In this document: piece by piece, positions 36,047-57,168 of the stretch
How positions within the stretch are numbered: position 1 is the stretch's first letter
Layout of the letters: every line of letters starts with the position of its first letter
Virus record (IMG/VR): IMGVR_UViG_3300044972_002389
Coordinates: 1 to 64,000 of that record
Length of the DNA stretch: 64,000 bases
Direction: 5' to 3' (one strand)
Notes under the pieces: generated by a model
What the model was told of the DNA's origin: nothing
The model's database searches: none
Seen by the model: only the letters and a program-made list of their open reading frames with translations
Position numbers and translations under genes: made by a program

Positions 36047-36057
36047 GGAAGCGCAAG

Positions 36058-37431: not shown

Positions 37432-37432
37432 C

Positions 37433-38794: not shown

Positions 38795-40134
38795 TGTCTA
38801 CCATCAATGTAGCTAATCTAGTGTTCACAATGCAGCAAAAAATATCCAGCACTACTAATGAGCAGGATTTGTTTTACTACAGCAAGGTATTGCAGCAGTT
38901 GAGAAGCGGCAAGGTGTATGTGGTGAACGCAGTGACTGATTTACCAACAGCCGCCGCAAATGTGGGTGAATTGTATTATGTTGTGTTGAATACCTCACTG
39001 TATGTGGCCACAGTTACGGGATGGGGTGTTATAGGTACTACTCCCCTAAACCAAATTTGGAGTTGGGGCTTTAACGGGTGTGGTCGGTTAGGAGACAACA
39101 CTGTCACTAGTCGCTCAAGTCCAGTGAGAGAAATCACCAGTTCCACCACTTGGTGTCAAACTTCAGCCGCCGCTGCCAACGGTGGTAGGACTAGTGCAAT
39201 AAAAACAGATAGCACACTGTGGACTTGGGGCTACAATGTCTCTGGTCAGTTGGGAGATAACACTGTTACAAGTCGCTCAAGTCCTGTAAGGGAAATCACA
39301 AGCTCAACCACTTGGTGTCAAACTTCAGCTGGTAATGCCCACACAAGCGCATTGAAAACAGATAGCACACTTTGGAGTTGGGGAAATGCATCCTGTGGTA
39401 CGCTGGGAAACAACACTGTCACTAGTCGCTCAAGCCCAGTGAGAGAAATCACCAGCTCAACTACTTGGTGTCAAACTTCGTCAGGCGGGTTTAACAGCGG
39501 CAGCCATACCAGTGCATTAAAAACAGATGGCACACTTTGGACTTGGGGCTGGAACGGTTGGGGTCAGTTGGGAGACAACACTGTTACGGCTAAGTCAAGT
39601 CCAGTGAGAGAAAGTAGCAGTTCAACCACTTGGTGTCAAACTTCAGCAGGCCCTACGAATACTGCTGCAATAAAAACAAATGGCACACTTTGGACTTGGG
39701 GAGAAAACGGGTCGGGCCAGCTGGGAAACAACACCATCACTAATAGTTCAAATCCAAACATAGAAATTACCAACAGCACCAATTGGTGTCGAACTTCAGC
39801 TGGTATCCATACCGCTGCAATAAAAACAGATGGCTCCCTGTGGACTTGGGGATACAATGGCTCTGGTCAGTTGGGAGACACCACTGTTACCAATCGCTCA
39901 AGTCCTGTAAGGGAAATCACCAGTTCCACCACTTGGTGTCAAACTTCTGTCGGGTGGATACATACCAGTGCATTAAAAATATATGGCACACTTTGGACTT
40001 GGGGCGGCAATGGCTCTGGTCAGTTGGGAGACACCACTGTTACCAATCGCTCAAGTCCTGTAAGGGAAATCACCAGTTCCACCACTTGGCGTCAAACATC
40101 AGCTGGTGGTTTTCACACCAGTGCCTTGAAGTAA
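38794..40134 (+). CDS. RCC1 repeat protein 5
   Basis: 7 repeats; TGATG coupling with the previous gene. Confidence 0.9.
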   Translation: MSTINVANLVFTMQQKISSTTNEQDLFYYSKVLQQLRSGKVYVVNAVTDLPTAAANVGELYYVVLNTSLYVATVTGWGVIGTTPLNQIWSWGFNGCGRLGDNTVTSRSSPVREITSSTTWCQTSAAAANGGRTSAIKTDSTLWTWGYNVSGQLGDNTVTSRSSPVREITSSTTWCQTSAGNAHTSALKTDSTLWSWGNASCGTLGNNTVTSRSSPVREITSSTTWCQTSSGGFNSGSHTSALKTDGTLWTWGWNGWGQLGDNTVTAKSSPVRESSSSTTWCQTSAGPTNTAAIKTNGTLWTWGENGSGQLGNNTITNSSNPNIEITNSTNWCRTSAGIHTAAIKTDGSLWTWGYNGSGQLGDTTVTNRSSPVREITSSTTWCQTSVGWIHTSALKIYGTLWTWGGNGSGQLGDTTVTNRSSPVREITSSTTWRQTSAGGFHTSALK

Positions 40135-40147
40135 ATGGAGACAGAAC

Positions 40148-41497
40148 ATGCCAACACCCTCTGAAATCCAAACTAGTATTGACTCATTAATAACTGCTTG
40201 CGACAGTGTTTGTTTTCCTTTGTTAGCAGCCCAAACCAGTGCTGCTGGAGTTGGCATTAGTTTTGTTGTTAACACAGTATCAGACTTACCTGACCTAGCT
40301 ACAAAGTGCATAGGTTTTGGTCAAACAGTTTTTGTCAAAAGTATTTGTGTACCTGTAATATCCACTTGTACTTCATGGGTGGGATTGGATGGTAGGGTTT
40401 TACGTCGAGATTGGCCTCTTAGACAGATGTGGACTTGGGGTCGTAATATATGCGGTCCGTTAGGAGACAACACTGTTACAAGTCGCTCAAGTCCAGTGAG
40501 AGAAATCACCAGTTCTGTCACTTGGTGTCAAACTTCGGCAGGCAGCGCCTTCACTAGTGCAATAAAAACAGATAGCACACTGTGGACTTGGGGATACAAT
40601 GTCCAGGGTCAGTTGGGAGTCAACACTGTTACAAGTCGCTCAAGTCCTGTAAGGGAAATCACCAGTTCAACTACTTGGTGTCAAACTTCAGCTGGTAATT
40701 CTCACAACAGTGCATTAAAAACAGATGGTACACTTTGGACTTGGGGATATAACGGGTGTGGCAGATTGGGAGATAACACTGTTACAAGTCGCTCAAGTCC
40801 AGTGAGAGAAATCACCAGTTCAACCACTTGGTGTCAAACATCAAGTGGTAGTTTTCACACCAGTGCATTAAAAACAGATGGTACACTTTGGAGTTGGGGA
40901 AATAACTATTGCGGTATGTTAGGAGACACCACTGTTACCAATCGCTCAAGTCCTGTAAGGGAAATCACCAGTTCCACCACTTGGCGTCAAACATCAGCTG
41001 GTAAAGGTATTACCATCAGTGCAGTAAAGACAGATGGCACACTTTGGAGTTGGGGGTGTAATAGGTGTGGGCAGTTGGGAGATAACACTGTTACCAATCG
41101 CTCAAGTCCGGTGAGAGAAATAAGCAGCAGCACCACTTGGTGTCAAACTTCGGCAAGCGCCTGGACTAGTGCAATAAAAACAGATGGCACACTTTGGAGT
41201 TGGGGATTTAACCAGTGTGGGCAGTTAGGAATCAACAACACAGGTCTACTATCAAGTCCAGGGAGAGAAATCACCAATTCCACCACTTGGTGTCAAACTT
41301 CAGCTGGTAGTAATCACAACACTGCAATAAAGACAGATGGCACACTTTGGACTTGGGGATTTAACGATTGCGGTGTGTTAGGAGATAACACTGTTACCAA
41401 TCGCTCAAGTCCGGTGAGAGAAATAAGCAGCAGCACCGCGTGGTGTCAAACTTCGGCCGGTTCCATGACGGCTGCAATTCTCCAGTGCTATAACTAG
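40148..41497 (+). CDS. RCC1 repeat protein 6
   Basis: 7 repeats; GGAG RBS. Confidence 0.9.
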   Translation: MPTPSEIQTSIDSLITACDSVCFPLLAAQTSAAGVGISFVVNTVSDLPDLATKCIGFGQTVFVKSICVPVISTCTSWVGLDGRVLRRDWPLRQMWTWGRNICGPLGDNTVTSRSSPVREITSSVTWCQTSAGSAFTSAIKTDSTLWTWGYNVQGQLGVNTVTSRSSPVREITSSTTWCQTSAGNSHNSALKTDGTLWTWGYNGCGRLGDNTVTSRSSPVREITSSTTWCQTSSGSFHTSALKTDGTLWSWGNNYCGMLGDTTVTNRSSPVREITSSTTWRQTSAGKGITISAVKTDGTLWSWGCNRCGQLGDNTVTNRSSPVREISSSTTWCQTSASAWTSAIKTDGTLWSWGFNQCGQLGINNTGLLSSPGREITNSTTWCQTSAGSNHNTAIKTDGTLWTWGFNDCGVLGDNTVTNRSSPVREISSSTAWCQTSAGSMTAAILQCYN

Positions 41498-41529: not shown

Positions 41530-42360
41530 ATGACCCTTACTCTATTCACCATCACAAACATCCAGCACGAACTCACTAGTTTCTCACTTCAAAAAACCCT
41601 TGCCTCTACACCGATCACCACCACAATTGTGGTGTCAGATCAACCATTAACTCTTGCACAACCCCATACACAATATCCAATTCCAGAAAACTTTGGCATG
41701 CTGGAATACTGTGATTTCTGCCTCAAGAGCATGCACAGCTACATCAACACTGATTTTGTGTTGATAGCACACTATGATGGCATAGCCACAAACCCCAAAG
41801 CCTGGACTGATGAATATTTTGAATATGATTACGTGGGCAGCCTCTCGCATCCTGAATTTCCGCCAATGAAAGGCAGCCTGCAAGCCAGTGGCCACTACCA
41901 AGAATTTAAAAACGCAGATTGGTTCACCTGTGGCGGAGGATTAAGCTTGCGAAGCCGTCGCCTCCTCAAAATCCTAGCTGAAGATCCCCAGATCAAAACC
42001 CGGAACTACACCCCCAATCACAACACGCCCTTCATCAGTGAGGATGCTGTGATTACACTGCTCAACCAGAATTACCTTGAAACTGCCTACAACATTCGAT
42101 TCGCTCCAGCACATATCAGCTTAAAATTCTGTGCAGAAGTGCTCACTGGTTACACCTCAGCATTGGGATTTCATGGTTGGTACAACGCACCTTTGTATCT
42201 CAGCGAACAAGAATGCCTCTTCTACTTTGAACATTTGGAAAAAATTGACTACAACAAAAACACCATGCAAGGGCAATTATTGAAATTTCACACCATGATG
42301 AAGGGATATTTACATTTACGTGATTATTTGATTTCTCAGGACAAATGGCTATTATACTAA
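41530..42360 (+). CDS. DUF5672-like (GT-A-like) protein
   Basis: INTDFVLIAHYDG..WTDEYFEYDYVG..GGGLSLRSRRLL..SED..GFHG. Confidence 0.7.
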   Translation: MTLTLFTITNIQHELTSFSLQKTLASTPITTTIVVSDQPLTLAQPHTQYPIPENFGMLEYCDFCLKSMHSYINTDFVLIAHYDGIATNPKAWTDEYFEYDYVGSLSHPEFPPMKGSLQASGHYQEFKNADWFTCGGGLSLRSRRLLKILAEDPQIKTRNYTPNHNTPFISEDAVITLLNQNYLETAYNIRFAPAHISLKFCAEVLTGYTSALGFHGWYNAPLYLSEQECLFYFEHLEKIDYNKNTMQGQLLKFHTMMKGYLHLRDYLISQDKWLLY

Positions 42361-42363
42361 GTT

Positions 42364-43968
42364 ATGAACATATTGGGAATGAATTTTTCTCACGACGGTG
42401 CTGTGGCAGTTGTGAAAAATGGCAGATTAACAGCAGCTTTGGGAACAGAACGTGTTACTAGAGAAAAAAAGGCTTTTGGTGTAACCAACAAAACAATTGA
42501 GGCTATACTTCAGGAAGCTTCACTTAAACCTGAGGACATCAGTTGCATAGCATTGGCTGACTACAAGGCCAACCACAGCAACGGTGTCTTGGCACTATAT
42601 GACAGTGATGGCAACACTGTGGAGAGAACTGCCTACTCACTCTACAACAACGACGTGCGAACGCTTACAGGTGTTTTCCTCGGCAGCCACAAAATACCAG
42701 TGTATGTGCTGCCACATCATTTGGCGCATGCCAGCAGTGCCTACTACACTAGCAATTTTGATAAGGCCATTTGTTTCAGCTTAGACAGCAGTTTTGGCGA
42801 ACTTGGCGACAACAACATGGTGTTTTTTGGTGAAGGCACTAAGCTTCAAGCTCAAATGTGCCCAACACTCATCTCAGGTATTGGGTATGCCATCTTCACC
42901 GAGCTGTTGGGTTTCTCCCCAGCCTACAGCAAGGCAGGCACCACCATGGGACTCAGCAGTTATGGTAAATCACTCACTGGCCCTATTTTTGATGAGATTT
43001 TGAAAAAACAATGGTTCAGTGTTCAAGAACACGCTGAGTTGGAATACAGGAAGTTCTGGAGCAATGTGTGGGAAAAACTCATTGCCAAGCACCCACATGA
43101 GCTCACACACAAGGAAAGCAGTGATTTGGCTGCTACTATTCAAGAGCTACTGGAGAAGAGTGTTCTGGAAACACTAGCTACACTGCACCAAATTTATCCG
43201 CAACGACAGTTATGCCTCAGTGGTGGCAGCATGCTGAACTGCATCTTGAACAGCCGGATAGCTGAAAGCAAGCTTTGGGAGGGCATTCATCACTTTCCTG
43301 CATGTGGCGATGACGGCAATGCGGTGGGCGCCGCTCTTTGGGTAGCGCACCATTTGTTTGACTTACCAAGGCAAAATTATCAACCGCAGAATTTATGTTA
43401 TTTGGGACCTTCTCAAAACACTACCTCCATTGTGGACTACACTAGAGTTTGTGAGCTACTGGCTCAAGGAGCTATAGTGGCCTGGCACTGGGGCAGAAGC
43501 GAATATGGGCCTCGAGCACTGGGCCACAGAAGTCTTTTGGCTGATGCACAAAGCTATCACATGCGTGAGAAAATAAATTTCGCAGTGAAAAACAGAGAAT
43601 GGTTTCGACCTATTGCGCCTGTGGTGTTGCAGGAACACGCCCACGATTGGTTCTCCTTGCCAATACCCTCGAGCCCCTACATGCTTTACACTGCACAAGT
43701 GCTGAAGCCGCAACTGATTCCAGCAGTGTGTCATGTGGACAACAGTGCACGCCCGCAAACTGTTACAGCTGAACAAAATCCCCAGTTGCACCAACTGCTC
43801 ACTTGTTACCATCAATTGACAGGCGTTCCTGTGCTGTGCAACACCAGCTTGAATGGCGCTGGAGAGCCCATTATGGAAACTCCTGAACAGAGTTTGAGAT
43901 TTTTTGAAACCAATGACAGCGTTGCCGCACTGATGTTGAATGGACAGCTTTTGGAGAAATCACAATGA
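42364..43968 (+). CDS. Carbamoyltransferase (NodU/CmcH family)
   Basis: SHDGAVA, ERVTREK, HHLAHA, MGLSSYG, LSGGSMLN, EYGPRALGHRS, KNREWFRPIAP, HVDNSARPQTV, NTSLN. Confidence 0.93.
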   Translation: MNILGMNFSHDGAVAVVKNGRLTAALGTERVTREKKAFGVTNKTIEAILQEASLKPEDISCIALADYKANHSNGVLALYDSDGNTVERTAYSLYNNDVRTLTGVFLGSHKIPVYVLPHHLAHASSAYYTSNFDKAICFSLDSSFGELGDNNMVFFGEGTKLQAQMCPTLISGIGYAIFTELLGFSPAYSKAGTTMGLSSYGKSLTGPIFDEILKKQWFSVQEHAELEYRKFWSNVWEKLIAKHPHELTHKESSDLAATIQELLEKSVLETLATLHQIYPQRQLCLSGGSMLNCILNSRIAESKLWEGIHHFPACGDDGNAVGAALWVAHHLFDLPRQNYQPQNLCYLGPSQNTTSIVDYTRVCELLAQGAIVAWHWGRSEYGPRALGHRSLLADAQSYHMREKINFAVKNREWFRPIAPVVLQEHAHDWFSLPIPSSPYMLYTAQVLKPQLIPAVCHVDNSARPQTVTAEQNPQLHQLLTCYHQLTGVPVLCNTSLNGAGEPIMETPEQSLRFFETNDSVAALMLNGQLLEKSQ

Positions 43969-44507
43969 AAATCTATATTGGCGCAGGTGAAGACAGGATT
44001 GATGGATATGTGCACTGTGACTACGATCCCAACTGCAATCCTGATTTTTGTTTTGACCTTGAAAAAGACATTTTCCCATTTCCCACCAACAGTGTAGATG
44101 TGTTGAGAGCCACTCATGTGTTAGAGCACTTGGGCGAGGGGTATTTTCACTGTCTGCAGGAAATTTATCGAGTGTGCAAACCTGGGGCAAGAGTACATAT
44201 TCATGTACCTCATCACCGCAGTGATGACTTCTTCAGCGACCCCACGCACAAACGCCCAGTCACTGTAGATGGCTTGCGCTTGTTTGGCTGCAAATACAAC
44301 CAATTGGCACGCAAGCAAGGTGCACATGCCAGTAGGCTTGCCGAACGCTACAATGTGGATTTTGAGGTGGTGGACTACAGCTTGCGACCCATGGAAAAAT
44401 ACAAAGATCAATTTGTGGGGCAACCTAAAGAACAGGTAGAGCAGTATCTTGAACAGCACTGTAACATAATCGACGAAGTCTACATTCAGTTAGTGGTAGT
44501 AAAGTAA
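43965..44507 (+). CDS. Class I SAM-dependent methyltransferase
   Basis: IYIGAG, HVLEHL, EIYRVCKPGA, DPTH. Confidence 0.82.
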   Translation: MKIYIGAGEDRIDGYVHCDYDPNCNPDFCFDLEKDIFPFPTNSVDVLRATHVLEHLGEGYFHCLQEIYRVCKPGARVHIHVPHHRSDDFFSDPTHKRPVTVDGLRLFGCKYNQLARKQGAHASRLAERYNVDFEVVDYSLRPMEKYKDQFVGQPKEQVEQYLEQHCNIIDEVYIQLVVVK

Positions 44508-44510
44508 CCC

Positions 44511-45866
44511 ATGAGCTCAACATTTGAGCATGTGAAAACCACAGCACTGGAGTTGGCCAAACAGGAAAATCATCCACTGGCATTTCAACTCTTGGACCAT
44601 TATTGGCCCAGAGCGCAAACACTGCTAGAGCTGGAAACTTTGGGCACAGTGAGCCTAAAGATTGGTCATACAGACTTGGCTGTCAAGTGTGCTGAAACTG
44701 TTGCAGGTATGTGCACTACACCTGAAGAATCTTATGTAGCAAGAGTGAACTTAGGCAAAGCCTATTATCGTGCAAATCAGCCAGAAAAAGCATTATTTTA
44801 CAATAAGATAAATTTGGAAATGCGCCCAAATGACTTTGACGCTATAGTGAGTTATGCTGCCAGTTTGAAGTTAAATGGTGAGCGTGGCGAGAGCGAAAGA
44901 GTAATAAATGATTTGAAGTGTCAGCCTTGGGTCACAGCTGACCAGTGCGAGAATCTGCGCATAACTGACACTCATCCACTGCTCCGAGCTGGACAAACTG
45001 CTGAAGGAATTCGGTGGTTCCTACACACGGACAGAGATCGCACAACTGTTTTTGACATCAAAGGAATGAGAATTTGGAATGGAGTGAAGGTGCCAGGCCA
45101 AACTCTCTATGTGAATGCCTGCGGAGGAGCTGGTGACGAGCTCATCAACATCAGGTTCTTCAACCATCTCAAAAACTTGGGTATGCAACCAAAACTTTTC
45201 AGCATATTAGACCGCCCTGGATTAGCCCAAGTGTTCCGCCGACATGGATTTGAAGTGTTGGTGAATGAGGAGGAGATTGATGTTCATCAGCCCTGGACTT
45301 ATCTCATGAACTTGCCTATTGATTTGGGTGTTGGCGAACAAGACCTTTGGAAAGGGCCTTATCTCACAGCGTCTGGCCAACCTCATACCAAACTGCCTGC
45401 GTCAAAAAAACTACGTGTTGGGGTAAAATGTCAAGGCAACCCTTATTTTGAGCAGGACATTTATCGCTGTATTCCTTTGGAGCAGATGCTGAGTGTGATA
45501 CCCTCGGATGTTGAAATCTACAATTTTGATCTACAGCACACGCACGAGAGATGCCATAATCTTCGAGCCAGGATCAACTCCTGGGACGACACACTGGACT
45601 ATCTCAGTCAAATGGATATTGTGCTCAGCAGTTGTACTAGTATAATACATGCAGCCGCCAGTATGGGAGTGCCTGGGATTGTGTGTGTGCCTATTTTGGA
45701 ATATTATGTTTGGACCAGCACACATACTGACGAGAGCACGCCATGGTATTCAAAAAGCTTACGTGTACTGAAGCAACAGACTCCAGGGTGTTGGTCTACA
45801 CCATTGCAGAGAGCAGGTGAAATTATTAAAACAACTCTACGAGAAAAACAACAAAATGACAACTGA
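44511..45866 (+). CDS. TPR protein with C-terminal GT9-like glycosyltransferase domain
   Basis: TPR helices, then GAGDELINIRF, SWDDTLDYLSQMDIVLSSCTSIIHAAASMG, PWY. Confidence 0.8.
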   Translation: MSSTFEHVKTTALELAKQENHPLAFQLLDHYWPRAQTLLELETLGTVSLKIGHTDLAVKCAETVAGMCTTPEESYVARVNLGKAYYRANQPEKALFYNKINLEMRPNDFDAIVSYAASLKLNGERGESERVINDLKCQPWVTADQCENLRITDTHPLLRAGQTAEGIRWFLHTDRDRTTVFDIKGMRIWNGVKVPGQTLYVNACGGAGDELINIRFFNHLKNLGMQPKLFSILDRPGLAQVFRRHGFEVLVNEEEIDVHQPWTYLMNLPIDLGVGEQDLWKGPYLTASGQPHTKLPASKKLRVGVKCQGNPYFEQDIYRCIPLEQMLSVIPSDVEIYNFDLQHTHERCHNLRARINSWDDTLDYLSQMDIVLSSCTSIIHAAASMGVPGIVCVPILEYYVWTSTHTDESTPWYSKSLRVLKQQTPGCWSTPLQRAGEIIKTTLREKQQNDN

Positions 45867-46635
45867 AAAACACTATCACATGATAAGCGGGCTACCACGG
45901 AGCGGAAGCACCTTGCTAAGCAGCATTTTGCGGCAGAATCCAGTGATGCATGCCAGCATTACTGATCCACTGGCCACTATGGTTCGAGGAGTGATTGAAA
46001 CTAGTGTAGACAGTCCTGGTATGCGAACAGAAGTACCAGTGAGTCGCAGAAAAAATCTTGTGCGAGCATTGTTTGACGGCTACTACCAAGATGTAGACAA
46101 AAGTATTTGTTGGAACACCAACCGAGCCTGGACCCGACTCTTGCCACAAATCCAGGAGGTTTATCCCAGCTCACGAGTGTTGGTTTGTGTGCGTGACCTC
46201 AAATGGGTTTTGGACAGTTTTGAAACTGCACATCGACGACACCCTTTTGACAAAAACACCATTTTTGGTGGGATTGGCGACAGTGTGTATGATCGGATGA
46301 ACTTGTTGATGGAGAAGAATGGCATAGTGGAATTTGCCTATACTGGAGTGAAACAAGCTATTACTAGTGCAGAAAAACATATGTTGATGTTGATCGAATA
46401 CGAACAGTTGTGTCGAAATCCCCAAGGCGTGCTCCAGGCAGTGTATAATTTCATCGGAGAACCCTACTACCCTCATGATTTTGACGCGGTAGAGGCCAGT
46501 TGGGACGAGTATGATGCAGAGATTGGTATGCAATTACATAAAATACACAGCAGAGTAGAATGGCGGCCTAGAGAAACTATTTTGCCTCCAGATATCTTAA
46601 GCCAATACTCCAATATGGAAGTTTGGAGATATTGA
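45856..46635 (+). CDS. Sulfotransferase
   Basis: GLPRSGSTLL PAPS-binding loop, VRD..VLDS, IEYEQLCRNP. Confidence 0.88.
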   Translation: MTTEKHYHMISGLPRSGSTLLSSILRQNPVMHASITDPLATMVRGVIETSVDSPGMRTEVPVSRRKNLVRALFDGYYQDVDKSICWNTNRAWTRLLPQIQEVYPSSRVLVCVRDLKWVLDSFETAHRRHPFDKNTIFGGIGDSVYDRMNLLMEKNGIVEFAYTGVKQAITSAEKHMLMLIEYEQLCRNPQGVLQAVYNFIGEPYYPHDFDAVEASWDEYDAEIGMQLHKIHSRVEWRPRETILPPDILSQYSNMEVWRY

Positions 46636-46637
46636 GC

Positions 46638-47453
46638 ATGAGTATTCAAAATACCAATCCTCTTGAGTTGCATGTGATTTTGCGCACTTGTGATCGAGCC
46701 AATGTACACAATGATTGGCGGGTGCGCTATTGTGACATGGAAAAAATTGACTTGGTAAAGGGCTGTTTCAACAGCCTTGTGGCTGCCATCCTACACTGCA
46801 CTTGGTTTCACGTAAAACTCACTGTGTTGGACGACAGCAGCAGCCCGGCGTTAGTGGAATTTCTTAAGGAAAAGGGATCTCTCTTACCAAATTTTGAACT
46901 GGTTCAATTGGAAACGCAAGGCTATCAAAACTCAGGACATGAGGTGTTTTTGCGTGCCAAAAACAGCAGTAGTGACTTAGTGTATTGTGTGGAAGATGAC
47001 TACTTACATGCGCCATCCTCTCTACAAGAGATGGTGGACAGCTATTTCCTCTTCAAACAAAAATTGAACAATGATCAGATAGTATTATATCCATTCGACG
47101 CGCCTGAATGCTATGATCCACCTACCCCACCCTGTTGGCTAGTGCATGGCACAGCTCGCCACTGGAGAAGCGGCATCTACACAACTTTTGTGATGTTGAC
47201 TGTGCCAAGCTTGATAGAACAAAATTGGGGTTTGTTTGAGGCCTTGAGTTTGAACTACAGCGGCATGTATTTGCGCAAGGGCAAGGAAAATGAGTTTCGC
47301 TACACAGAAGACAACACTATCTGGAATATTTGGCGGAACGGACCAGCCATTAGATTCAATCCTATTCCCAGCTTGGCTCTGCACATGCAATTTGATGCGC
47401 AAATGGATCCATTCTTAGACTGGAAACAGTGGTGGCAAAATTATGCCCAATAG
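46638..47453 (+). CDS. GT-A-fold glycosyltransferase
   Basis: VLDDSSS, VYCVEDDYLH, PIPSLALH. Confidence 0.72.
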   Translation: MSIQNTNPLELHVILRTCDRANVHNDWRVRYCDMEKIDLVKGCFNSLVAAILHCTWFHVKLTVLDDSSSPALVEFLKEKGSLLPNFELVQLETQGYQNSGHEVFLRAKNSSSDLVYCVEDDYLHAPSSLQEMVDSYFLFKQKLNNDQIVLYPFDAPECYDPPTPPCWLVHGTARHWRSGIYTTFVMLTVPSLIEQNWGLFEALSLNYSGMYLRKGKENEFRYTEDNTIWNIWRNGPAIRFNPIPSLALHMQFDAQMDPFLDWKQWWQNYAQ

Positions 47454-47820
47454 AAGTTGCGGGAGTTGCACTGCCTGTTGTGAAGGCCATCTCTATGGCA
47501 ATGCCTATGGAAACATTCAAACTCGCGGCACCCCCTGCAGATTTTTGCACACCACAGGTTGCACCATTTACATCACTAAACCTGAATTCTGCACTCGGTT
47601 TCAATGCCTTTGGCTACAAGGGCTGTTGGACGACAGCATGCGTCCCAGTGAGTGCGGGCTCTTGGTCACTGTTGAAAGAATGGCAGACAAAACACAAAGG
47701 TTGCATGCGACAGAAGTTTGGCCGCAAGTGCCTCTCAGCAGCTATCAAAACTTGGCAAAATGGGCCAAAGACTTAGACACCACCTGGGAATTGCGAAAGT
47801 ACCATGAGCTACAATCCTGA
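47443..47820 (+). CDS. YkgJ-like Cys-cluster (putative Fe-S/Zn) protein
   Basis: CGSCTACC..PCRFL..GCTIY..PEFCTRFQCLWL. Confidence 0.78.
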   Translation: MPNRSCGSCTACCEGHLYGNAYGNIQTRGTPCRFLHTTGCTIYITKPEFCTRFQCLWLQGLLDDSMRPSECGLLVTVERMADKTQRLHATEVWPQVPLSSYQNLAKWAKDLDTTWELRKYHELQS

Positions 47821-48469
47821 TTTTTTCAAACCCGAAAGTTTTGAACATGCACAAAGCTTGATCTTAACTCCTGAAGGTGGCACCACTGCTGGCAGATGGG
47901 AAAAAGAAACCCAATGGGCACTCAATATGTTGACCACATTCTCCCCTGTTGATGAAAACAGTAGAGTGCTGGATTGGGGGTGTGGTGTGGGTCGATTAAG
48001 CCAGGCATTGATTCAAGCGCATAGCTGTAGTGTAGTGGGTGTGGATCTGCAACCAGAGATGCTGGAATTGGCAAATGATTATGTGAATCACAAAAACTTC
48101 TCTTCTGTGGCATTGAGTGATGCGCCTGGCTTGTTGAAATCAGGAACTTTCACTCATGTGATGTGTGTTTGGGTTTTGCAACATAGTCCTTATATAGAGC
48201 AGGAAATTCCCCTTCTGTGGCACCTTTTGCAGCCAGGGGGAACAATTTTTGTGGTGGAAAACATCACTAAAGCCATTCCCAATCAAACAAGTTTTTATGA
48301 TGATGGGGTTCCCACCACTACAGTTTTGGAGAAAACAGGATTTGAAACACAAGCACAAGGGCTCATCCCTTCCCACGTTACCACACCAAGAGTTCACAAA
48401 AACAGCTGGTGGCGATTGCTCACCAAACCCAACAAAAGGATCCTCAATGAACACGACATTCATCATTAA
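47804..48469 (+). CDS. Class I SAM-dependent methyltransferase
   Basis: VLDWGCGVGRL, GVDL, WVLQH, LLQPGG. Confidence 0.87.
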   Translation: MSYNPDFFKPESFEHAQSLILTPEGGTTAGRWEKETQWALNMLTTFSPVDENSRVLDWGCGVGRLSQALIQAHSCSVVGVDLQPEMLELANDYVNHKNFSSVALSDAPGLLKSGTFTHVMCVWVLQHSPYIEQEIPLLWHLLQPGGTIFVVENITKAIPNQTSFYDDGVPTTTVLEKTGFETQAQGLIPSHVTTPRVHKNSWWRLLTKPNKRILNEHDIHH

Positions 48470-49376
48470 CGGTGGCGCCGGCCGTGTGATTGCAGCCATA
48501 CCAGCACTGGAGAAATATGCACGATTGAACCCAACAGACGACTTCAAGGTGCTGATACATGGCTGGGAGTTGCTGTTCTGGAGCCACCCATTACTGCAAA
48601 ATCGCAGTTTTAGTATTAGCCAAAAAGGTGCGTTTGACTTGTTCATCCGAAACAATCGTGTGGTGTGTCCAGAGCCTTATTATATTCACGGCTACTACAA
48701 TCAGCGTTTGAGCTTAGCTGAGGCCTTTGATGAGGAAATCAACAAAACTGATGATCACTGTGATTTGGAACATCCACATCTCTACATCAGCAATCTGGAA
48801 AGAGACACTGTGAGACGACTTATCAAGGAAAAGCTAGCCGAAACCAACAAACGTCGACTTGTTGTAATCCAACCCTACGGCAGCGGCATTGGCATGATGA
48901 ATGGAAAACCCTATGACAGCAGCCATCGCAGCATGGATCCTGATGACTATCTCAGCCTGGTTCAAAAATTCAACAAAGACATTTTGGTAGTGTATTTTGG
49001 CTTGCGTGAGCTTAAGCACCCTGGAGACAAAACCAGTATTGATCTTGACACCATGAATCCAGATCTCAGAATGTATTTGAGTTTTATAGCAGAGTGTGAC
49101 TATTTTGTTGGGTGCGACAGCGTAGGGCAACACATGGCGCGCTCTATGGCGAAGCCTGGTTTGGTGATGATGGGCAGTACAGATGAAATCAATGTCAGCT
49201 ATCCCAACCATTTCAAAATCTACCGTAATGGGCAAAAGCCAGTATATAGCCCTATCAGACTTACTGGCACAGATTGTGAATTTGCGGACCGGATGAATGA
49301 TGGCATAATGCGGTTCAGCAACAAACAAATTGACGAAATCGCACAAATTGTAAATTTTGAAGTGTTTAAAAACTGA
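48447..49376 (+). CDS. GT9-like (heptosyltransferase-like) glycosyltransferase
   Basis: INGGAGRVIAA..VIQPYG..CDYFVGCDSVGQHMARS; ATG after AAGGA. Confidence 0.72.
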   Translation: MNTTFIINGGAGRVIAAIPALEKYARLNPTDDFKVLIHGWELLFWSHPLLQNRSFSISQKGAFDLFIRNNRVVCPEPYYIHGYYNQRLSLAEAFDEEINKTDDHCDLEHPHLYISNLERDTVRRLIKEKLAETNKRRLVVIQPYGSGIGMMNGKPYDSSHRSMDPDDYLSLVQKFNKDILVVYFGLRELKHPGDKTSIDLDTMNPDLRMYLSFIAECDYFVGCDSVGQHMARSMAKPGLVMMGSTDEINVSYPNHFKIYRNGQKPVYSPIRLTGTDCEFADRMNDGIMRFSNKQIDEIAQIVNFEVFKN

Positions 49377-50161
49377 TGACAGGGTCAAGTGGATTGACAG
49401 GTGTGAAGCACCATTTGCTGGTCAGCAGTGGCAAAGGCGGTGTAGGCAAAAGCACTGTAGCTGCAAACTTGGCAGCCAGCTTAGCTCATCAAGGCTTGCG
49501 TATAGGACTATTGGATGCTGATATTTCTGGTCCCAGTCAAGCAGTGATGTGGGCATTACCAGAAAACACCAGTGTAAAAGTCAGCACTGACCCCCAGCTG
49601 AGCTTGCCTTTTGTTCAATATGGTGTAAAAATAACCACGTTGGCCACGAGAATAAGTGAAAGTCAAGCTGTTAGTTGGCGAGGTCCAATGATGAGTATGG
49701 GTGTAATCAATTTGTTGTGCCACACTGATTGGGGAGAACTAGACTGTTTAGTAGTGGACATGCCTCCAGGCACTGGAGATGTTCACACCAGCATTTGTGA
49801 CAAATTACCCTCTGCAGGAGTAGTGACTGTGACAACCCCGCAACGGGTGGCTGTTGCTGATACAAGACGAGGCATGCAAATGTATCAAAACAGAGGATTA
49901 CGGTTGTTGGGCGTCGTGGAAAACATGAGCACACATGTTTGTGAGAATTGCGGACATACTAATCATGTTTTTGGTCACTCTGGTGCAGCCACGTTGTGCC
50001 AAGAATTTGATACCAAAATTTTGTGCAGTTTGCCCTTGAATGCTGAGTTGCGATGGCAAGGAGATGAAGGCGCTCCACTGGTGGTAGCTGACCCCTCACA
50101 TATTTTGAGTGCCTTGTTCCTAGATACAGCCAGTGAGATTTGGAGACTTTTGAATGACTAG
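49376..50161 (+). CDS. apbC: Mrp/ApbC/NBP35-family Fe-S cluster carrier ATPase
   Basis: SGKGGVGKST, DADISGPS, WRGPM, DMPPGTGD, VTTPQ, VENMS..CENC. Confidence 0.9.
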   Translation: MTGSSGLTGVKHHLLVSSGKGGVGKSTVAANLAASLAHQGLRIGLLDADISGPSQAVMWALPENTSVKVSTDPQLSLPFVQYGVKITTLATRISESQAVSWRGPMMSMGVINLLCHTDWGELDCLVVDMPPGTGDVHTSICDKLPSAGVVTVTTPQRVAVADTRRGMQMYQNRGLRLLGVVENMSTHVCENCGHTNHVFGHSGAATLCQEFDTKILCSLPLNAELRWQGDEGAPLVVADPSHILSALFLDTASEIWRLLND

Positions 50162-51083
50162 CACACCAATGGTGAGAGGCATGGTGAAATTGATCCATGC
50201 TGACAATTTTTTAAATCCACAGGATGCACAACGAGCCGCACAAGTGGTGCAGGGGCTGAGATTCACGCCCAACAGTTATGGAATGGAGTTGGAAAACTTC
50301 AACATGGTGCTGGATCGACTTGAGCCGGTAATGAGCAAGGTATTGGGCGAGCGTGTGGTTATTGATCACAAGCGCAGCGGAGTGTTTCGCCGTCCCTTGA
50401 ACAACGTGATTCATTTTGAAGAGTTTGACTCACCCAATGAGTGGGCCTTTGTCTGTGCACTGGAGAGAACAACTCTCAACCTCTATCATCATATTAACTC
50501 CTCTGGCGAAGTTGATGCAGAAACAGCACTTGACGGCTACAACTTCAACTACATGAATTTGTTTGAGTGGAATTTGCACACCAACATTTTGTTGGAACCC
50601 AGCCAAGGTGTGTTTTTCAGGCCGTGGGTATTTCACAGCCTTGATCAGGGTATGGTGCAGTATTATCGTCTGTGTACTGATCGCAAGTTTAGAGTGTTGG
50701 TGATGGGTGCACCTGGCAGCAATCGTGCAGAGATGTCTCGAAAGCTGCATGAGAAATTGCCAAGCAGTGCTTTGATGCGCAGTTGGGACGTGAGAGTGCG
50801 TGACAAAGACATTGATTTTAGCATTGATGGCAGAATGAGACAAAGCTATCGCATGCTAACTATGGCACGTAACGATCGAAGCAGTTGTGTGATTTTAGAT
50901 CATGCATGTCCTCTTGACGATCAACGGCAAGTCATCAATCCTGATGTGTTGGTGTGGATGCGCAGCGGTGATGAAGCTGAGCTTGAGCCACCACAATATT
51001 ATGATTTTGAGCTGCTCACAGCGGATGACGAGTCTGTGGACAAAATAATCAAAAAGATTGAAACCAAAAAAATCACACTCTAA
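50154..51083 (+). CDS. Fusion: 2OG-Fe(II) oxygenase-like N-domain plus adenylylsulfate-kinase-like C-domain
   Basis: IHFE..VFFRPWVFHS (DSBH-like); VLVMGAPGSNR (degenerate P-loop), DVR..DIDFSIDGRMRQ, CP..QR. Confidence 0.6.
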   Translation: MTSTPMVRGMVKLIHADNFLNPQDAQRAAQVVQGLRFTPNSYGMELENFNMVLDRLEPVMSKVLGERVVIDHKRSGVFRRPLNNVIHFEEFDSPNEWAFVCALERTTLNLYHHINSSGEVDAETALDGYNFNYMNLFEWNLHTNILLEPSQGVFFRPWVFHSLDQGMVQYYRLCTDRKFRVLVMGAPGSNRAEMSRKLHEKLPSSALMRSWDVRVRDKDIDFSIDGRMRQSYRMLTMARNDRSSCVILDHACPLDDQRQVINPDVLVWMRSGDEAELEPPQYYDFELLTADDESVDKIIKKIETKKITL

Positions 51084-51464: not shown

Positions 51465-52043
51465 ATGAGTAATTATATATCGTTGATTGTGCCACAAAAA
51501 CTGTCTAAATCTGTTGTATTGCAGTGGTTTACCTGTGTTGAAACACAACTACCTAGTGGTCTTATTGGAAAGACCACTTTATACAGTCACGATATCACAC
51601 GAGAAAGTAATTTTTATGCCAAAAAAACCCGTTCAGGCAAATTTTGTTATACAATTCCTTTGGTTCGCGACATAACTGATAGTGAATTGTACTTCCTGGT
51701 TCAAGAATGGAACAAAACTTTCCCCAAAGGCGACTTCCTCATTGACAGTAGCCAAAATACTGTTACAGCCTCTCCTGGAGCTACACGCATACAAGACACT
51801 GCTATTGACGAAATCTTAAATCTTTGGGCAAAACACCAGCACACTCGCTGGATGAAAGAAGCAGTTGACAAGGGATGGAAATTTGGTATCAAAATGAGCA
51901 CAGCCCAGAAAACACACCCACTTATACAACCTTGGGAACAATTGCCCTCTACAGCTAGAGAACAAAACATAGAGGCTGTAAAAGACTTATTGAGTATCCT
52001 AGACAATTTTGGTTACCAGATCAGTCAAAAAACTACCGCCTAA
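51465..52043 (+). CDS. RyR-domain protein
   Basis: AKHQHTRWMKEAVDKGWKFG..KTHPLIQPWEQLP..REQN. Confidence 0.8.
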   Translation: MSNYISLIVPQKLSKSVVLQWFTCVETQLPSGLIGKTTLYSHDITRESNFYAKKTRSGKFCYTIPLVRDITDSELYFLVQEWNKTFPKGDFLIDSSQNTVTASPGATRIQDTAIDEILNLWAKHQHTRWMKEAVDKGWKFGIKMSTAQKTHPLIQPWEQLPSTAREQNIEAVKDLLSILDNFGYQISQKTTA

Positions 52044-52151
52044 AAACTTGCACCCTTAAAATTATCACCGTTAAATAAACATGCTGGATACAGTGTTCAG
52101 CATGTTTGTATCTCCAGGCAGTTTAGACCTGGACGTGAAAGAAGGCAAGTA

Positions 52152-52904
52152 ATGCAACAAAATAATAACCCAGTCTGGGCAAATCCTTTTCCTGCACAAT
52201 CACTAGTGAATTGGACACCAGCCGCAGCTGGTCGCAATGGAACTCTTATTGCAGTGGTTCTTGATGAAAGTGGAAGCATGGGCCGTGTGCGCGATGCTAC
52301 AATTTCTGGATTGAATGAGTTTGTTGAAGGACAAAAGACTGCCGAAGGCGCTGGTGATGCCTATCTCACTATTGTTAAATTTGACGCCCCACAAATCACT
52401 ACATTGTTTGAAAATCAACATGTGAAGTCTGTTAAGGCACTTACATCAGCTGACTATCAGCCTGGTGGTGGCACCAACCTAATGGATGCTATTGGGCACA
52501 CTTTGGAAAAGATCAACAAGGTTCTTAACTCAGTGCCTCAGGCCGAACGGCCAGGTGTGCTGGTTGTGATTGTAACTGACGGCGAGGAAAACTCAAGCCG
52601 CAGCTACAACACAGCTCAAATCAAGGAAATGGTCAAGCTGAGTGAAGCCTCTGACTGGACTTTCACCTTCCTTGGTGCCAATGTAGATGCATTTGCAATG
52701 GGTCACACATTTGGTATGCAACAAAGTAACACAGTAACCTACTCAACCAACAGCATGGCAGACACCATGGATGTGCTAAGCAAGACCACTACTCGTGTTC
52801 GCATGGCCAAAAGTGCTGGAGTATCTACCGCTGATCTCTATGCAAGCGAGACTATGTATAGCGCAGTTGATCGCAACACGGTAATGGGCAACAAAAATGC
52901 GTAA
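52152..52904 (+). CDS. von Willebrand factor A domain protein
   Basis: LDESGSM MIDAS, GGTNLMDAIG, IVTDGEENSS, FLGAN. Confidence 0.9.
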   Translation: MQQNNNPVWANPFPAQSLVNWTPAAAGRNGTLIAVVLDESGSMGRVRDATISGLNEFVEGQKTAEGAGDAYLTIVKFDAPQITTLFENQHVKSVKALTSADYQPGGGTNLMDAIGHTLEKINKVLNSVPQAERPGVLVVIVTDGEENSSRSYNTAQIKEMVKLSEASDWTFTFLGANVDAFAMGHTFGMQQSNTVTYSTNSMADTMDVLSKTTTRVRMAKSAGVSTADLYASETMYSAVDRNTVMGNKNA

Positions 52905-53672: not shown

Positions 53673-54518
53673 ATGGAAACAGCAATTTCAGTTTTTGGGG
53701 CCACAGGATTTGTGGGCAGTGCATTTGTTCAAAAAACCCAACACAAATGCATAGGTGTTCCTCGAAATTCCCGAACTCCTCCCACAAACAACATACTGTA
53801 TCTCATCTCTACAACTGACAATTATAATGTATTCAGTGACCTGCACAAGGACATCAATACAAATTTAAATGTATTGATGGAGACCCTACAACACTGCAAT
53901 CAACCAGATGTTGTTTTCAATTTTGTGTCATCTTGGTTTGTGTATGGAAGTCATACACAATTACCTGTTCCTGAAACTGCGCATTGTGATCCTCGGGGAT
54001 TTTACAGCATTACCAAGAGAACAGCAGAGCAGCTCTTGATGAGCTGGTGCAACACCTTTGGCGTCAAGTATCGTATCCTGCGTTTGTCTAACATTTATGG
54101 GCCAGGAGACGCTGGAGCAAGCACAAAGAAAAACGCTATCCAACACATGGTCTCACAATTGTATCATAACAAACCCATTGACTTGTATGAGAATGGTATG
54201 GTTTACAGAGACTTACTCTATATTGACGACGCAGTAAGAGCCATCAGCTTGGTGCTTGAAAAAGGTGAGCTCAACACTATCTACAACATTGGCTCAGGGC
54301 ATGCCACGCTATTGCGTGATGTGATTGACATATCTGCCCATCTAACAAATAGTAGATCTCAGATCAATGGCATACCAACACCTGAATTTCATCAAAAAAT
54401 ACAAAGTCGAGATTTTTGGCTTGATACGACCCTGCTTCAAAGTTTGGGGTTTGCGCCTCAAGTGTGTTTGACACAAGGCTTAACTGATCTTATCCGCAGC
54501 ATTTCCACACACTCTTAA
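53673..54518 (+). CDS. NAD-dependent epimerase/dehydratase
   Basis: GATGFVG, SSWFVYG, YSITK (YxxxK), RLSNIYGPG. Confidence 0.9.
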   Translation: METAISVFGATGFVGSAFVQKTQHKCIGVPRNSRTPPTNNILYLISTTDNYNVFSDLHKDINTNLNVLMETLQHCNQPDVVFNFVSSWFVYGSHTQLPVPETAHCDPRGFYSITKRTAEQLLMSWCNTFGVKYRILRLSNIYGPGDAGASTKKNAIQHMVSQLYHNKPIDLYENGMVYRDLLYIDDAVRAISLVLEKGELNTIYNIGSGHATLLRDVIDISAHLTNSRSQINGIPTPEFHQKIQSRDFWLDTTLLQSLGFAPQVCLTQGLTDLIRSISTHS

Positions 54519-54539
54519 CAAAAAGGCCTTGAGTTTTTC

Positions 54540-56795: not shown

Positions 56796-56828
56796 TAACT
56801 CTTTGAAACGTTTTTGACTGGCAGGGTG

Positions 56829-56857
56829 TTGACAGCACAAAAACTACGCGCTATATA
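56829..56857 (+). promoter_or_regulatory. Sigma70-like promoter TTGACA-17-TATATA
   Basis: Intergenic, upstream of AAGGAG and ATG 56893. Confidence 0.65.
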
Positions 56858-56892
56858 CAGATACACTACAAACACACAAAGGAGAGACTCAA

Positions 56893-57087: not shown

Positions 57088-57114
57088 ATTTTGTGCGGGA
57101 GTCACAATTTGGTG

Positions 57115-57142
57115 TTGACTCCCGCACACACTGCTGTATAGT
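57115..57142 (+). promoter_or_regulatory. Sigma70-like promoter TTGACT-16-TATAGT overlapped by a 13-bp inverted repeat
   Basis: Upstream of the ligase gene. Confidence 0.6.
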
Positions 57143-57168
57143 GTGCTGACAAAGAGGGAAGAGAGCGT

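Follow-up and report, generated by a model that had tools for sequence, protein, structure and literature searches.

An eleven-gene tailoring block beside RCC1-repeat genes of a jumbo phage: a candidate pathway for glycosylation of tail fibres

The 64,000-nucleotide stretch of virus record IMGVR_UViG_3300044972_002389 analysed here (the window) carries, at positions 41530-51083, a block of eleven open reading frames (ORFs), g1 to g11, all on the + strand. By family assignment they form a glycan-building and glycan-tailoring gene set, as an earlier note made from the sequence alone had described them. The block is separated by 32 nt from an upstream array of six genes encoding RCC1-repeat proteins (32713-41497), and the two are regarded as parts of one conserved phage module, in which the block is the enzyme half and the RCC1 array the other half. 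Gene context, protein folds and domain architectures point to cytoplasmic glycosylation of the RCC1 proteins, taken to be fibre proteins, followed by tailoring of the attached glycan. This is the best-supported reading of the locus, with a probability of about 0.5.

The window matches bases 72137-136136 of a 148,227-base IMG/VR virus record with a CheckV completeness of ~62%. Near-identical contigs (identical across the fetched 21-kb stretches) reach 328,603 bases at an estimated completeness of 77%, and the phage is therefore a jumbo phage with a genome of roughly 430 kb. The metagenomes of its relatives are probably from freshwater, judging by their sample numbers. A megablast search of the block against isolated phages gave no DNA-level match. 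The eleven ORFs are real genes, since other IMG/VR phage contigs carry them in conserved order with protein identities of 40-85%.

The junctions from g1 to g11 measure +3, -4, +3, -50, -13, -11, -17, -23, -1 and -8 nt; they range from a 3-nt spacer to a 50-nt overlap, the majority being overlaps of 1-23 nt. The value of -23 between g8 and g9 assumes that g9 starts at ATG 48447, judged the most likely start, and alternative starts of g5 (ATG 45856) and g6 (ATG 46638) give junctions of -11 and +2, respectively. The description of the block as contiguous, mostly overlapping genes directly downstream of the array is thus correct. It had also been called an operon. Because nearly all long ORFs listed from ~21.4 kb to the window end lie on the + strand (except a 232-aa ORF on the - strand, 56501-57199), this "operon" is a functional grouping of co-directional genes, not a demonstrated transcription unit. 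Its boundaries are arbitrary, and a promoter/terminator scan found nothing convincing bracketing the block.

The gene list of the earlier note is largely borne out: a carbamoyltransferase, two methyltransferases, a sulfotransferase, a family-2 glycosyltransferase (GT2), two GT9-like enzymes, a Cys-cluster protein and an Mrp-type carrier are present. Of four claimed glycosyltransferase-like proteins, three (g4, g6 and g9) stand; the fourth, g1, is a DUF5672 protein that is tied to GT9 chemistry through fusions only, and its status as a transferase is not supported. In a Kyte-Doolittle scan, the threshold of 1.6 is exceeded in just one of the eleven proteins, g4, by a single window (1.91) that lies inside the confidently modelled GT-B core and reads as a buried strand; all eleven proteins are read as soluble. 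No flippase, polymerase, ligase or transporter/exporter gene was found in the block.

Table 1. Predicted features of the window (APS, adenosine 5'-phosphosulfate; PAPS, 3'-phosphoadenosine 5'-phosphosulfate; SAM, S-adenosylmethionine; 2OG, 2-oxoglutarate; SDR, short-chain dehydrogenase/reductase; PLP/PMP, pyridoxal/pyridoxamine phosphate; TPR, tetratricopeptide repeat)
Feature	Position	Strand	Assignment	Evidence
g1	41530-42360	+	DUF5672 protein, accessory	Pfam PF18922, 1.6e-9
g2	42364-43968	+	NodU/CmcH/TobZ-type O-carbamoyltransferase, accessory	Pfam; phrog_1601
g3	43965-44507	+	short (180 aa) class-I SAM methyltransferase, core	Pfam Methyltransf_11, 8.2e-8; phrog_6636
g4	44511-45866	+	TPR domain (1-177) and GT9-like GT-B domain (190-450), core signature enzyme	AlphaFold model, VIA, Foldseek
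g5	45817-46635 (likely start ATG 45856)	+	PAPS-type sulfotransferase, core	Pfam; phrog_27463, 9.5e-45
g6	46623-47453	+	family-2 (GT-A) glycosyltransferase	Pfam Glycos_transf_2, 9e-6, 26.2 bits, cut-off 23.3
g7	47443-47820	+	CxxCxxCC (YkgJ/PF03692-like) protein, 125 aa, core in distant loci	phrog_9155, 3.5e-19
g8	47804-48469	+	full-length class-I SAM methyltransferase, accessory	Pfam Methyltransf_11, _25, _12, _23, 1e-10 to 1e-13
g9	48447-49376	+	GT9-like glycosyltransferase (phrog_8954)	phrog_8954, 1.9e-75
g10	49376-50161	+	Mrp/ApbC/NBP35-type Fe-S carrier ATPase, accessory	Pfam PF10609, 4.2e-79, 265.9 bits
g11	50154-51083	+	2OG/Fe(II) oxygenase domain (~8-176) and APS-kinase-fold domain (177-309)	model (pLDDT 85), Foldseek, VIA
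Six RCC1 genes	32713-34062, 34059-35378, 36058-37431, 37418-38794, 38791-40134, 40148-41497	+	RCC1-repeat proteins	Pfam RCC1/WD40_RLD
DUF4376 gene	35396-36046	+	tail-fibre-chaperone-like, interleaved in RCC1 array	Pfam
Second glycan cassette	14357-20605	-	TPR protein, GT2+TPR, two DUF7796 proteins, nucleotidyltransferase-HAD fusion	Pfam, NCBIfam
Fusion within that cassette	19505-20605	-	sugar-1-phosphate nucleotidyltransferase and HAD phosphatase	
SDR gene	53673-54518	+	SDR dehydratase/epimerase	Pfam Epimerase, 5.8e-34
RfbH-like gene	54540-55844	+	PLP/PMP enzyme	Pfam DegT_DnrJ_EryC1, 1.2e-70; NCBIfam RfbH, 4e-106, 355 bits, cut-off 423
Giant ORF	1645-9183	-	2,512 aa	
Chaperone/unfoldase pair	21419-24605	+	DnaJ and ClpA-like ATPase	
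Fibre genes	26226-30538	+	collagen-repeat tail-fibre protein and Gly_rich_2 domain protein	
Fibre chaperone gene	30729-31397		tail-fibre assembly chaperone	
RyR and VWA genes	51465-52904	+	RyR-domain and VWA-domain proteins	
Glutathionylspermidine synthase homologue	59896-61155	+	adjoins DNA ligase and endonuclease	phrog_6215, 1.3e-119

The six RCC1 paralogues align with divergent N-termini of ~90 aa and seven conserved blades. These seven-bladed beta-propellers are proposed to be the fibre proteins that accept the glycan. DUF4376 and Phage_tail_APC chaperone domains are found near the RCC1 genes.

For the signature enzyme, g4, Pfam gives sub-threshold TPR matches alone and no match to PF01075; a distant homologue (P0080) does contain PF01075. 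The AlphaFold model computed from 38 homologues (pLDDT 93) has a TPR superhelix followed by a GT-B fold. VIA comparison of the catalytic domain gives Z scores of 16.3 with a Veillonella GT9 protein (3tov), 15.9 with WaaF (1psw), 15.4 with TibC and 14.2-14.6 with WaaC, versus ~10-11 for the best non-GT9 GT-B families; as modelled, the domain clearly belongs with GT9. The top Foldseek matches of the whole chain are SPINDLY (SPY) and OGT (E 1e-7, TM score 0.3-0.37), and D209 of a GGxGD motif, a candidate counterpart of the N-lobe residues Asp13 of WaaC and Asp110 of TibC, is invariant in the 38 homologues. From its modelled architecture, g4 is proposed to be a protein O-glycosyltransferase. A complex prediction for g4 with the adjacent RCC1 protein (score 0.01) counts neither for nor against the proposal.

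The TPR-GT9 family, with 5,607 cluster representatives at E <= 1e-30, also has cellular members, proteins of 1.4-3.1 kaa from cyanobacteria and SAR86 with up to ten tandem units. The loci of such giant relatives are L042 (P0202) and L041 (P0228). A 3,114-aa relative with up to ten tandem TPR-GT9 units is encoded in an Oscillatoriales metagenome-assembled genome. A SAR86 contig encodes a 1,414-aa relative (three matched stretches) beside a 4,396-aa protein, and its neighbours include two TPR-sulfotransferase fusions and a polysaccharide pyruvyl transferase, a gene neighbourhood that echoes the phage module.

Eight Cys residues are invariant in g7, including the cluster C6-x2-C9-x2-C12-C13. Weak PF03692 matches, none of which reaches the cut-off, were obtained for seven of eight homologues (best E 0.0056), and the YcgN model is matched by g7 with an E of 0.004. 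The protein is likely to bind Fe or Fe-S and is a probable partner of g4. Homologues are present in the freshwater T4-like cyanophage S-SRM01, in the marine single-cell virus AG-345-E08 and in two metagenomic contigs (L031, L033). A metagenomic protein of 561 aa (P0066) joins a g4 homologue and a PF03692 CxxCxxCC domain in one chain; in the Rosetta-stone sense, this hints at g4 and g7 acting as a unit. Because TibC requires a Cys4 iron finger for assembly and activity (PMC4358343), this fusion supports the protein-glycosylation reading. The Mrp/ApbC protein g10, which has a deviant Walker A motif (GKGGVGKS) and a C-terminal CENC (CxxC) motif, fits as the loader of g7. Its match to NCBIfam ApbC covers model positions 100-349 alone, and the score (253 bits, cut-off 348) is below the cut-off because the N-terminal domain is missing.

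Two further proteins are linked to GT9. In an hhalign comparison, g9 aligns to the g4 family over the C-lobe with a probability of 81% (E 1.2e-5), with DSVGQH aligned to CTSxxH; an invariant Arg13 replaces the Asp of the GT9 N-lobe. The Atlas neighbours of g9 form a cluster named 'ADP-heptose:LPS heptosyltransferase family' (LPS, lipopolysaccharide), with PF01075 in 22% of members, and PF01075 also matches weakly at the g9 position of a near-identical 328-kb contig (G001). The same contig, that of locus L007, has weak GT9-type matches at 89674-89790 (+) and 103084-103209 (-); the phage may encode more GT9-like enzymes than the two of the block. The Atlas structural neighbours of g1 are DUF5672 proteins alone, many of them fused to GT9, TPR+SEC-C or Methyltransf_24, and g1 was found solely in its own lineage and L021. 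Sequence searches of g1 and g9 against chains of the Protein Data Bank (PDB) gave no match, and a literature search on DUF5672 found nothing related.

The decorating enzymes are readily assigned. Both domains of g2 are well above their cut-offs: the Kae1-like Carbam_trans_N (PF02543) with 7.9e-44 and 150.9 bits (cut-off 24), and the YrdC-like Carbam_trans_C (PF16861) with 8.5e-59 and 198.4 bits (cut-off 27). It matches phrog_1601 over its full length (4e-105) and scores 201.5 bits against the NodU equivalog NF041651, for which the cut-off is 1000. By these scores, g2 is a member of the superfamily with the full two-domain build, not a NodU orthologue. The sulfotransferase g5 matches Sulfotransfer_3 (1.3e-13, 52.2 bits, cut-off 27) and Sulfotransfer_1 (6.6e-12, 45.8 bits, cut-off 22) and has PRSGST, a motif of the 5'-phosphosulfate-binding type, near its N-terminus. 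Domains and motif together fit the PAPS-dependent sulfotransferases; a sequence search of g5 against PDB chains found nothing. Its homologues adjoin RCC1 genes in S-SRM01, AG-345-E08, L035 and L036, and lie two to three genes from the RCC1 array, in the same module, in L031, L033 and L037. Homologues of the short methyltransferase g3 (40-43% identity) are found directly upstream of the g4 homologues in L031 and L033, and a Methyltransf_11 gene takes this place in L037. The second methyltransferase, g8, was found solely in its own lineage and L021. The GT2 enzyme g6 is kept at 50-70% identity in all loci of the lineage.

The last protein of the block, g11, combines two folds. VIA places the N-terminal domain nearest to the putative oxygenase 3dkq, PiuC and SnoN (Z ~13), and ALKBH6, PtlH, HygX and SnoN are matched by fold. 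Across 35 homologues, H87-x-E89, H161 and R172 show little or no variation; their spacing suggests that H87/E89/H161 form the iron triad and that R172 is the 2OG-binding Arg. The C-terminal domain was matched by VIA to 30 APS kinases (Z 15-18, root-mean-square deviation 1.9-2.8, ~130 residues aligned) and by profile to 2yvu (E 0.009); a sequence search of g11 against PDB chains gave nothing. Its Walker A sequence, GAPGSNRA, is without the Lys-Ser/Thr, most homologues having Arg or a variable residue there, and at the place of the DGD motif (LDGD in 2yvu and E. coli CysC) the family has variable residues. An Arg, a KD-x-x-FS stretch and a following Arg pair are kept and align with the corresponding residues of CysC, where they presumably line the APS site. 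The domain is probably not a kinase, which corrects the annotation of the block's "APS kinase"; most likely it only binds a nucleotide of the adenosine phosphosulfate type (APS- or PAPS-like). Its structural matches include 1i2d and 1m8p, which we take to be fungal ATP sulfurylase with a non-catalytic, allosteric PAPS-binding copy of the APS-kinase fold. In relatives of the L012/L013 type the oxygenase domain occurs alone.

The oxygenase/APS-kinase-like fusion that had been proposed for g11 therefore stands as far as both modelled folds go, but the kinase motifs are lost. The PAPS supply attributed to it is not supported. In the phage genome the sole match to PF01583 (APS kinase) is the P-loop of Mrp, and no ATP sulfurylase (PF01747) was found in the 328 kb of G001. 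With the kinase motifs of g11 lost and no ATP sulfurylase found, the sulfotransferase must rely on host PAPS. The same 328 kb gave no match to PF00124 (psbA), PF00303 (thymidylate synthase family), PF13580 (GmhA-type SIS) or PF00294 (PfkB), and because G001 is estimated to be 77% complete, absences there are not proven.

A core set consisting of the RCC1 array, the Cys-cluster protein, the short methyltransferase, TPR-GT9, the sulfotransferase and usually the 2OG oxygenase recurs in the ~430-kb jumbo lineage, in S-SRM01, in BUCT-ZZ01, in AG-345-E08 and in six metagenomic contigs. It sits within tail-fibre/neck regions in every context examined, and the synteny with RCC1 genes that had been predicted holds throughout. 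The order in the jumbo lineage is RCC1, g3, g4, g5, (a methyltransferase in some), g6, (g7), (g8), g9, (g10), g11, with g1, g2 and g8 confined to the closest relative. Related phages differ in whether they carry the genes for the carbamoyltransferase, the second methyltransferase, Mrp and DUF5672.

Enzyme and RCC1 genes are interleaved, beyond mere adjacency. In S-SRM01, the RCC1-interleaved module follows directly after the baseplate and long-tail-fibre genes in the order RCC1, hypothetical, RCC1, TPR protein (27% identical to g4 over the full length), 2OG oxygenase, three hypotheticals, g7 homologue, RCC1, sulfotransferase, glycosyltransferase and epimerase. In BUCT-ZZ01, a T4-like phage of Synechococcus elongatus, a tail fibre, a small hypothetical and an RCC1 gene are followed by a protein with the catalytic (GT9) domain of g4. 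The module of AG-345-E08 likewise has RCC1 genes. A search of 50,697 phage records found g4 homologues in three distinct phages only (four records; S-SRM01 twice), and these three are also the best matches of the window RCC1 protein. From metagenomes, six contigs carrying g4 homologues (26-45% identity) were sampled, and all have two to six RCC1 genes just upstream of the g4 homologue. The sulfotransferase gene is present in five of them, the other (L032) ending before that position, and homologues of g3 and g7 were confirmed in two (L031, L033). GT25 or GT2 genes and 2OG oxygenases are frequent. Some of the contigs carry tail-fibre markers (Peptidase_S74, Gly_rich_2, DUF4376), and one, L037, runs straight into T4 gp13, gp14, gp15, terminase and sheath genes.

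Another pair that recurs is g9 with the carbamoyltransferase; their homologues adjoin each other in S-CAM1/S-CAM3 and three other contigs (L003, L024, L025). In S-CAM3, the pair is among tail-fibre genes and adjoins ADP-heptose synthesis genes. Such genes (PfkB and CTP_transf_like) are also found in the related modules L033 and L013 and hint at ADP-heptose as the donor of g4. In L013, an FkbM methyltransferase gene (8594-9232) lies between the sulfotransferase and GT2 genes, and a split HldE-like pair (CTP_transf_like, PfkB) is at 12169-14081. Relatives of this Lake-type sublineage carry both the FkbM methyltransferase and the HldE-like pair; the latter was not found in the 328 kb of the genome nearly identical to the phage studied here.

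Phage glycan clusters, cyanophage Nol-like carbamoyltransferases and virion glycosylation in mycobacteriophages and giant viruses are already known. Undescribed in the searched literature are the module that joins RCC1 fibre genes to TPR-GT9, Cys-cluster protein, short methyltransferase, sulfotransferase and 2OG oxygenase, and its spread from T4-like cyanophages to jumbo phages. The searched literature gave no link between cyanophage and RCC1, and nothing that looked related on phages with a carbamoyltransferase, a sulfotransferase and a glycosyltransferase together. The "RCC1" of a prasinovirus paper is the prefix of a culture-collection strain, not the protein, and a DNA-condensing role, the guess of the phAPEC6 authors for phage RCC1 proteins, was rejected here on account of the tail-fibre context.

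Nucleotide-sugar genes downstream of the block (53673-55844), syntenic in L021, are likely to feed the tailoring system. The product of the second, a "DegT aminotransferase", is closest to RfbH, the CDP-6-deoxy-4-hexulose 3-dehydrase of 3,6-dideoxyhexose synthesis, a likeness that points to a dideoxy- or deoxy-sugar as donor. Enzymes of the RfbH/E1 type contain an Fe-S cluster, and the RfbH-like enzyme is a possible second client of the Mrp Fe-S carrier.

In the pathway proposed here, the soluble TPR-GT9 enzyme g4 would act, probably at a late stage of infection, in the host cytoplasm, where its TPR domain would bind newly made RCC1 fibre proteins. It would O-glycosylate them, probably with heptose, as TibC and AAH do with autotransporter adhesins and in the manner of OGT and SPY. 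Its metal-binding partner would be g7, into which g10 would load Fe or Fe-S, perhaps also serving the RfbH-like dehydrase. The glycan would be extended by g6, g9 and perhaps g1. Capping would be the work of the methyltransferases g3 and g8, of the sulfotransferase g5 with PAPS from the host, and of the O-carbamoyltransferase g2 with carbamoyl phosphate and ATP. Hydroxylation, either of a sugar or of the acceptor protein, would fall to the 2OG oxygenase domain of g11. The receptor-binding fibres would end up with a glycan coat that is charged and variable. The acceptor is placed in the cytoplasm because the proteins read as soluble and because the block has no flippase, polymerase, ligase or exporter gene. 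Glycosylation of the RCC1 fibres is considered best supported because of the interleaved RCC1 association, the TPR-plus-GT-B architecture, the likeness to TibC and the P0066 fusion. Further points in its favour are the translational coupling and conserved order of the co-directional genes, the tail-fibre chaperone domains among the RCC1 genes, the ADP-heptose genes of related modules, and the finding that the three phages with a g4 homologue are also the best RCC1 matches.

Several points weigh against this reading. GT9 enzymes classically act on the LPS core, at the cytoplasmic membrane face, and the VIA scores within GT9 do not separate TibC from WaaC and WaaF. Heptose-synthesis genes were not found in the 328 kb of the near-identical genome. 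That the RCC1 proteins of these phages are virion components and glycoproteins is deduced from context, and the S-SRM01 paper takes up neither point. The linkage to fibre genes could also be explained if the enzymes alter the receptor of the fibres themselves. Similar cyanophage clusters have been read as systems for host capsule/O-antigen modification or secondary-metabolite synthesis (PMC7824862).

Remodelling of the host envelope is a live alternative and the most probable of the rivals, though clearly less likely than the fibre reading. Acting at the cytoplasmic face, the enzymes would modify the LPS core, O-antigen, capsule or some other glycan of the cell surface, masking the receptor against superinfection or keeping progeny from re-adsorbing to debris, and the gene linkage would arise because enzyme and RCC1 receptor-binding fibre have one glycan as their common target. 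The LPS heptosyltransferases make up GT9, and for g4 the scores with WaaF and WaaC are on a par with that for TibC. In P. aeruginosa, the LPS-core heptose is O-carbamoylated by a NodU-type enzyme encoded beside waaC/waaF, which parallels the pairing of g9 with a carbamoyltransferase. Nucleotide-sugar genes typical of O-antigen pathways are present, e.g., the RfbH-like gene, and the published reading of cyanophage clusters of glycosyltransferase and carbamoyltransferase genes is of this kind (Iyer et al. 2021, PMC7824862). However, the block encodes no initiating transferase, flippase, polymerase, ligase or exporter, and its eleven proteins have no convincing membrane segment. The TPR-plus-GT-B architecture of g4 resembles protein glycosyltransferases, and the interleaving of enzyme and RCC1 genes in T4-like tail-fibre/neck regions fits late virion functions, not early takeover.

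The apparent solubility of all the proteins would also suit a secondary metabolite, i.e., a glycosylated, sulfated, carbamoylated and methylated compound, antibiotic-, toxin- or signal-like, made during infection. Carbamoyltransferase, sulfotransferase, methyltransferases and 2OG oxygenase are typical natural-product tailoring enzymes, and such a product has been proposed for clusters of the S-SSM6a type in cyanophages (PMC7824862). It is improbable here: neither block nor flanks encode a scaffold-forming enzyme (polyketide synthase, nonribosomal peptide synthetase, cyclase or amidinotransferase), three to four glycosyltransferases and a TPR domain dominate the block, and the constant linkage to RCC1 fibre genes is left unexplained. 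A saxitoxin/cylindrospermopsin-like toxin pathway (carbamoyltransferase, sulfotransferase, APS kinase) was rejected for want of a scaffold enzyme. Hypermodification of DNA, which the earlier note had offered together with virion fibres and host surface, is more improbable still and finds no support. Phage 2OG oxygenases of the TET/JBP type, encoded beside glycosyltransferases, are known to hypermodify DNA (mentioned in PMC12619734); by analogy the oxygenase would hydroxylate a base, the kinase-fold domain activate it, and the transferases add and decorate a sugar as a shield against restriction. The top Foldseek match of g11 is indeed an AlkB homologue, with poor superposition (TM score 0.33/0.43, root-mean-square deviation 7.6). 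Yet VIA places the oxygenase nearest to 3dkq, PiuC and SnoN, not TET/JBP, and the kinase-fold domain is without its catalytic motifs. The 328 kb hold no thymidylate-synthase-like hydroxymethylase, and the block itself showed neither a DNA methyltransferase nor a DNA-binding domain. In every context the module accompanies fibre genes rather than replication genes. Among the three targets that had been offered, virion fibres have the strongest support. The probability beyond the four readings weighed here is reserved for explanations not considered.

Other genes of the window are listed in Table 1. Between the block and the sugar genes are a RyR-domain protein (192 aa) and a VWA-domain protein (250 aa), both conserved in L021, the closest relative. 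Upstream of the RCC1 array, the gene for a 670-aa tail-fibre protein with collagen repeats precedes that for a Gly_rich_2 domain protein; the 26-30 kb region is GC-rich (48-52%) with strong GC skew. The g11 oxygenase could in principle act on such collagen-like Pro/Lys residues. A phage-borne chaperone/unfoldase pair consists of a full DnaJ (J and C-terminal domains) and, after it, a ClpA-like double-AAA ATPase of 789 aa that shares 44-47% identity with its counterparts in the jumbo phages Atu_ph07 and Phosso. A single ORF encodes 2,512 aa for which Pfam gives nothing at E <= 0.001; its product could be a giant protein that the jumbo phage builds into its virion or injects. The DNA ligase beside the glutathionylspermidine synthase homologue is ATP-dependent, and the window also encodes PhoH.

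Aquatic phages, from T4-like cyanophages to jumbo phages of ~430 kb, may share a dedicated modification pathway for RCC1 receptor-binding fibres, comprising hydroxylation, TPR-GT9 heptosylation with an iron-Cys protein, extension, and sulfation, methylation and carbamoylation. This wider proposal is tentative. If true, phage virions would here be seen for the first time with a virus-encoded coat of sulfated glycoprotein, and host range would gain a new, diversifiable layer above the sequence of the fibre protein. As a rule, the host range of a phage is inferred from the sequences of its receptor-binding proteins. If the fibres are glycosylated, adsorption specificity, resistance to protease and lectin-like defences, and stickiness of the particles in water would depend on a hidden enzymatic layer that varies between otherwise similar phages. 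Fibre glycosylation is a testable reading, the core module being present in cultured Synechococcus phages. BUCT-ZZ01 has S. elongatus PCC 7942 as host, a genetically tractable model strain. The TPR-GT9 family reaches beyond phages, and so does the question of its acceptor.

The block shares features with several known systems. The C-terminal domain of g11 has the fold of APS kinase (CysC) and of the fungal ATP sulfurylase domain, but is ~40 residues shorter than the matched chains and is fused to a 2OG oxygenase. With Nod-factor decoration (NodU, NodH, NodS, NodPQ) the block shares O-carbamoylation, sulfation and methylation of a glycan; it differs in having no active APS kinase or ATP sulfurylase and no sign of a lipo-chitooligosaccharide backbone. 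This parallel had been put forward as an analogy of function, rightly, and orthology was rejected: in NCBIfam, NodU gave 201 bits against a cut-off of 1000, NoeE was negligible, and NodH, NodS and NodQ were not matched.

The cyanophage LPS/capsule and carbamoyltransferase clusters (P-SSM2, S-SSM7/S-SSM6a, S-CAM1/3; PMC7824862) likewise contain the g9 family and a Nol-like carbamoyltransferase, often adjacent, together with 2OG oxygenases, methyltransferases, HAD phosphatases and nucleotide-sugar genes, and are hypervariable between related phages. Unlike the present module, they have not been linked to RCC1, TPR-GT9 or sulfotransferase genes and have been interpreted as host-surface or metabolite systems. 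Here the carbamoyltransferase is accessory, and the conserved core consists of RCC1, TPR-GT9, Cys protein, methyltransferase and sulfotransferase. In virion glycosylation of mycobacteriophage capsids and tails (Freeman et al. 2023, cited in PMC12619734) and of giant-virus fibrils and capsids, viral glycosyltransferase genes also lie beside structural genes, and modification takes place in the cytoplasm without host secretory machinery. The present, predicted system differs in using GT9-like and DUF5672 families, in adding a sulfotransferase, a carbamoyltransferase and an oxygenase, and in its proposed acceptor, a beta-propeller fibre protein.

The GT41 enzymes (OGT, SPINDLY and bacterial XcOGT) resemble g4 in their N-terminal TPR superhelix followed by a GT-B catalytic domain. 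However, the catalytic domain of g4 is closer to GT9 (Z 14-16), with no GT41 entry among the 50 matches listed; whole-chain TM scores are low (0.3-0.37), and g4 is much shorter, with no intervening domain seen. The bacterial autotransporter heptosyltransferases (BAHT), TibC and AAH acting on TibA and AIDA-I, are alike in their GT9-like GT-B domain, in being soluble cytoplasmic enzymes, and in being encoded beside the gene for a repetitive, adhesin-like acceptor. The Cys-bound iron site of TibC (PMC4358343) is paralleled by the separate eight-Cys protein g7. In TibC, a beta-barrel, an iron finger and a beta-hairpin thumb build the dodecamer (PMC4358343), whereas g4 has an N-terminal TPR domain in place of the beta-barrel and neither an in-chain Cys4 iron finger nor a beta-hairpin thumb. 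A beta-propeller is proposed as the acceptor here in place of a beta-helix, and the system is viral, with many tailoring enzymes following. Thus, g4 may work like a BAHT but does not belong to that family.

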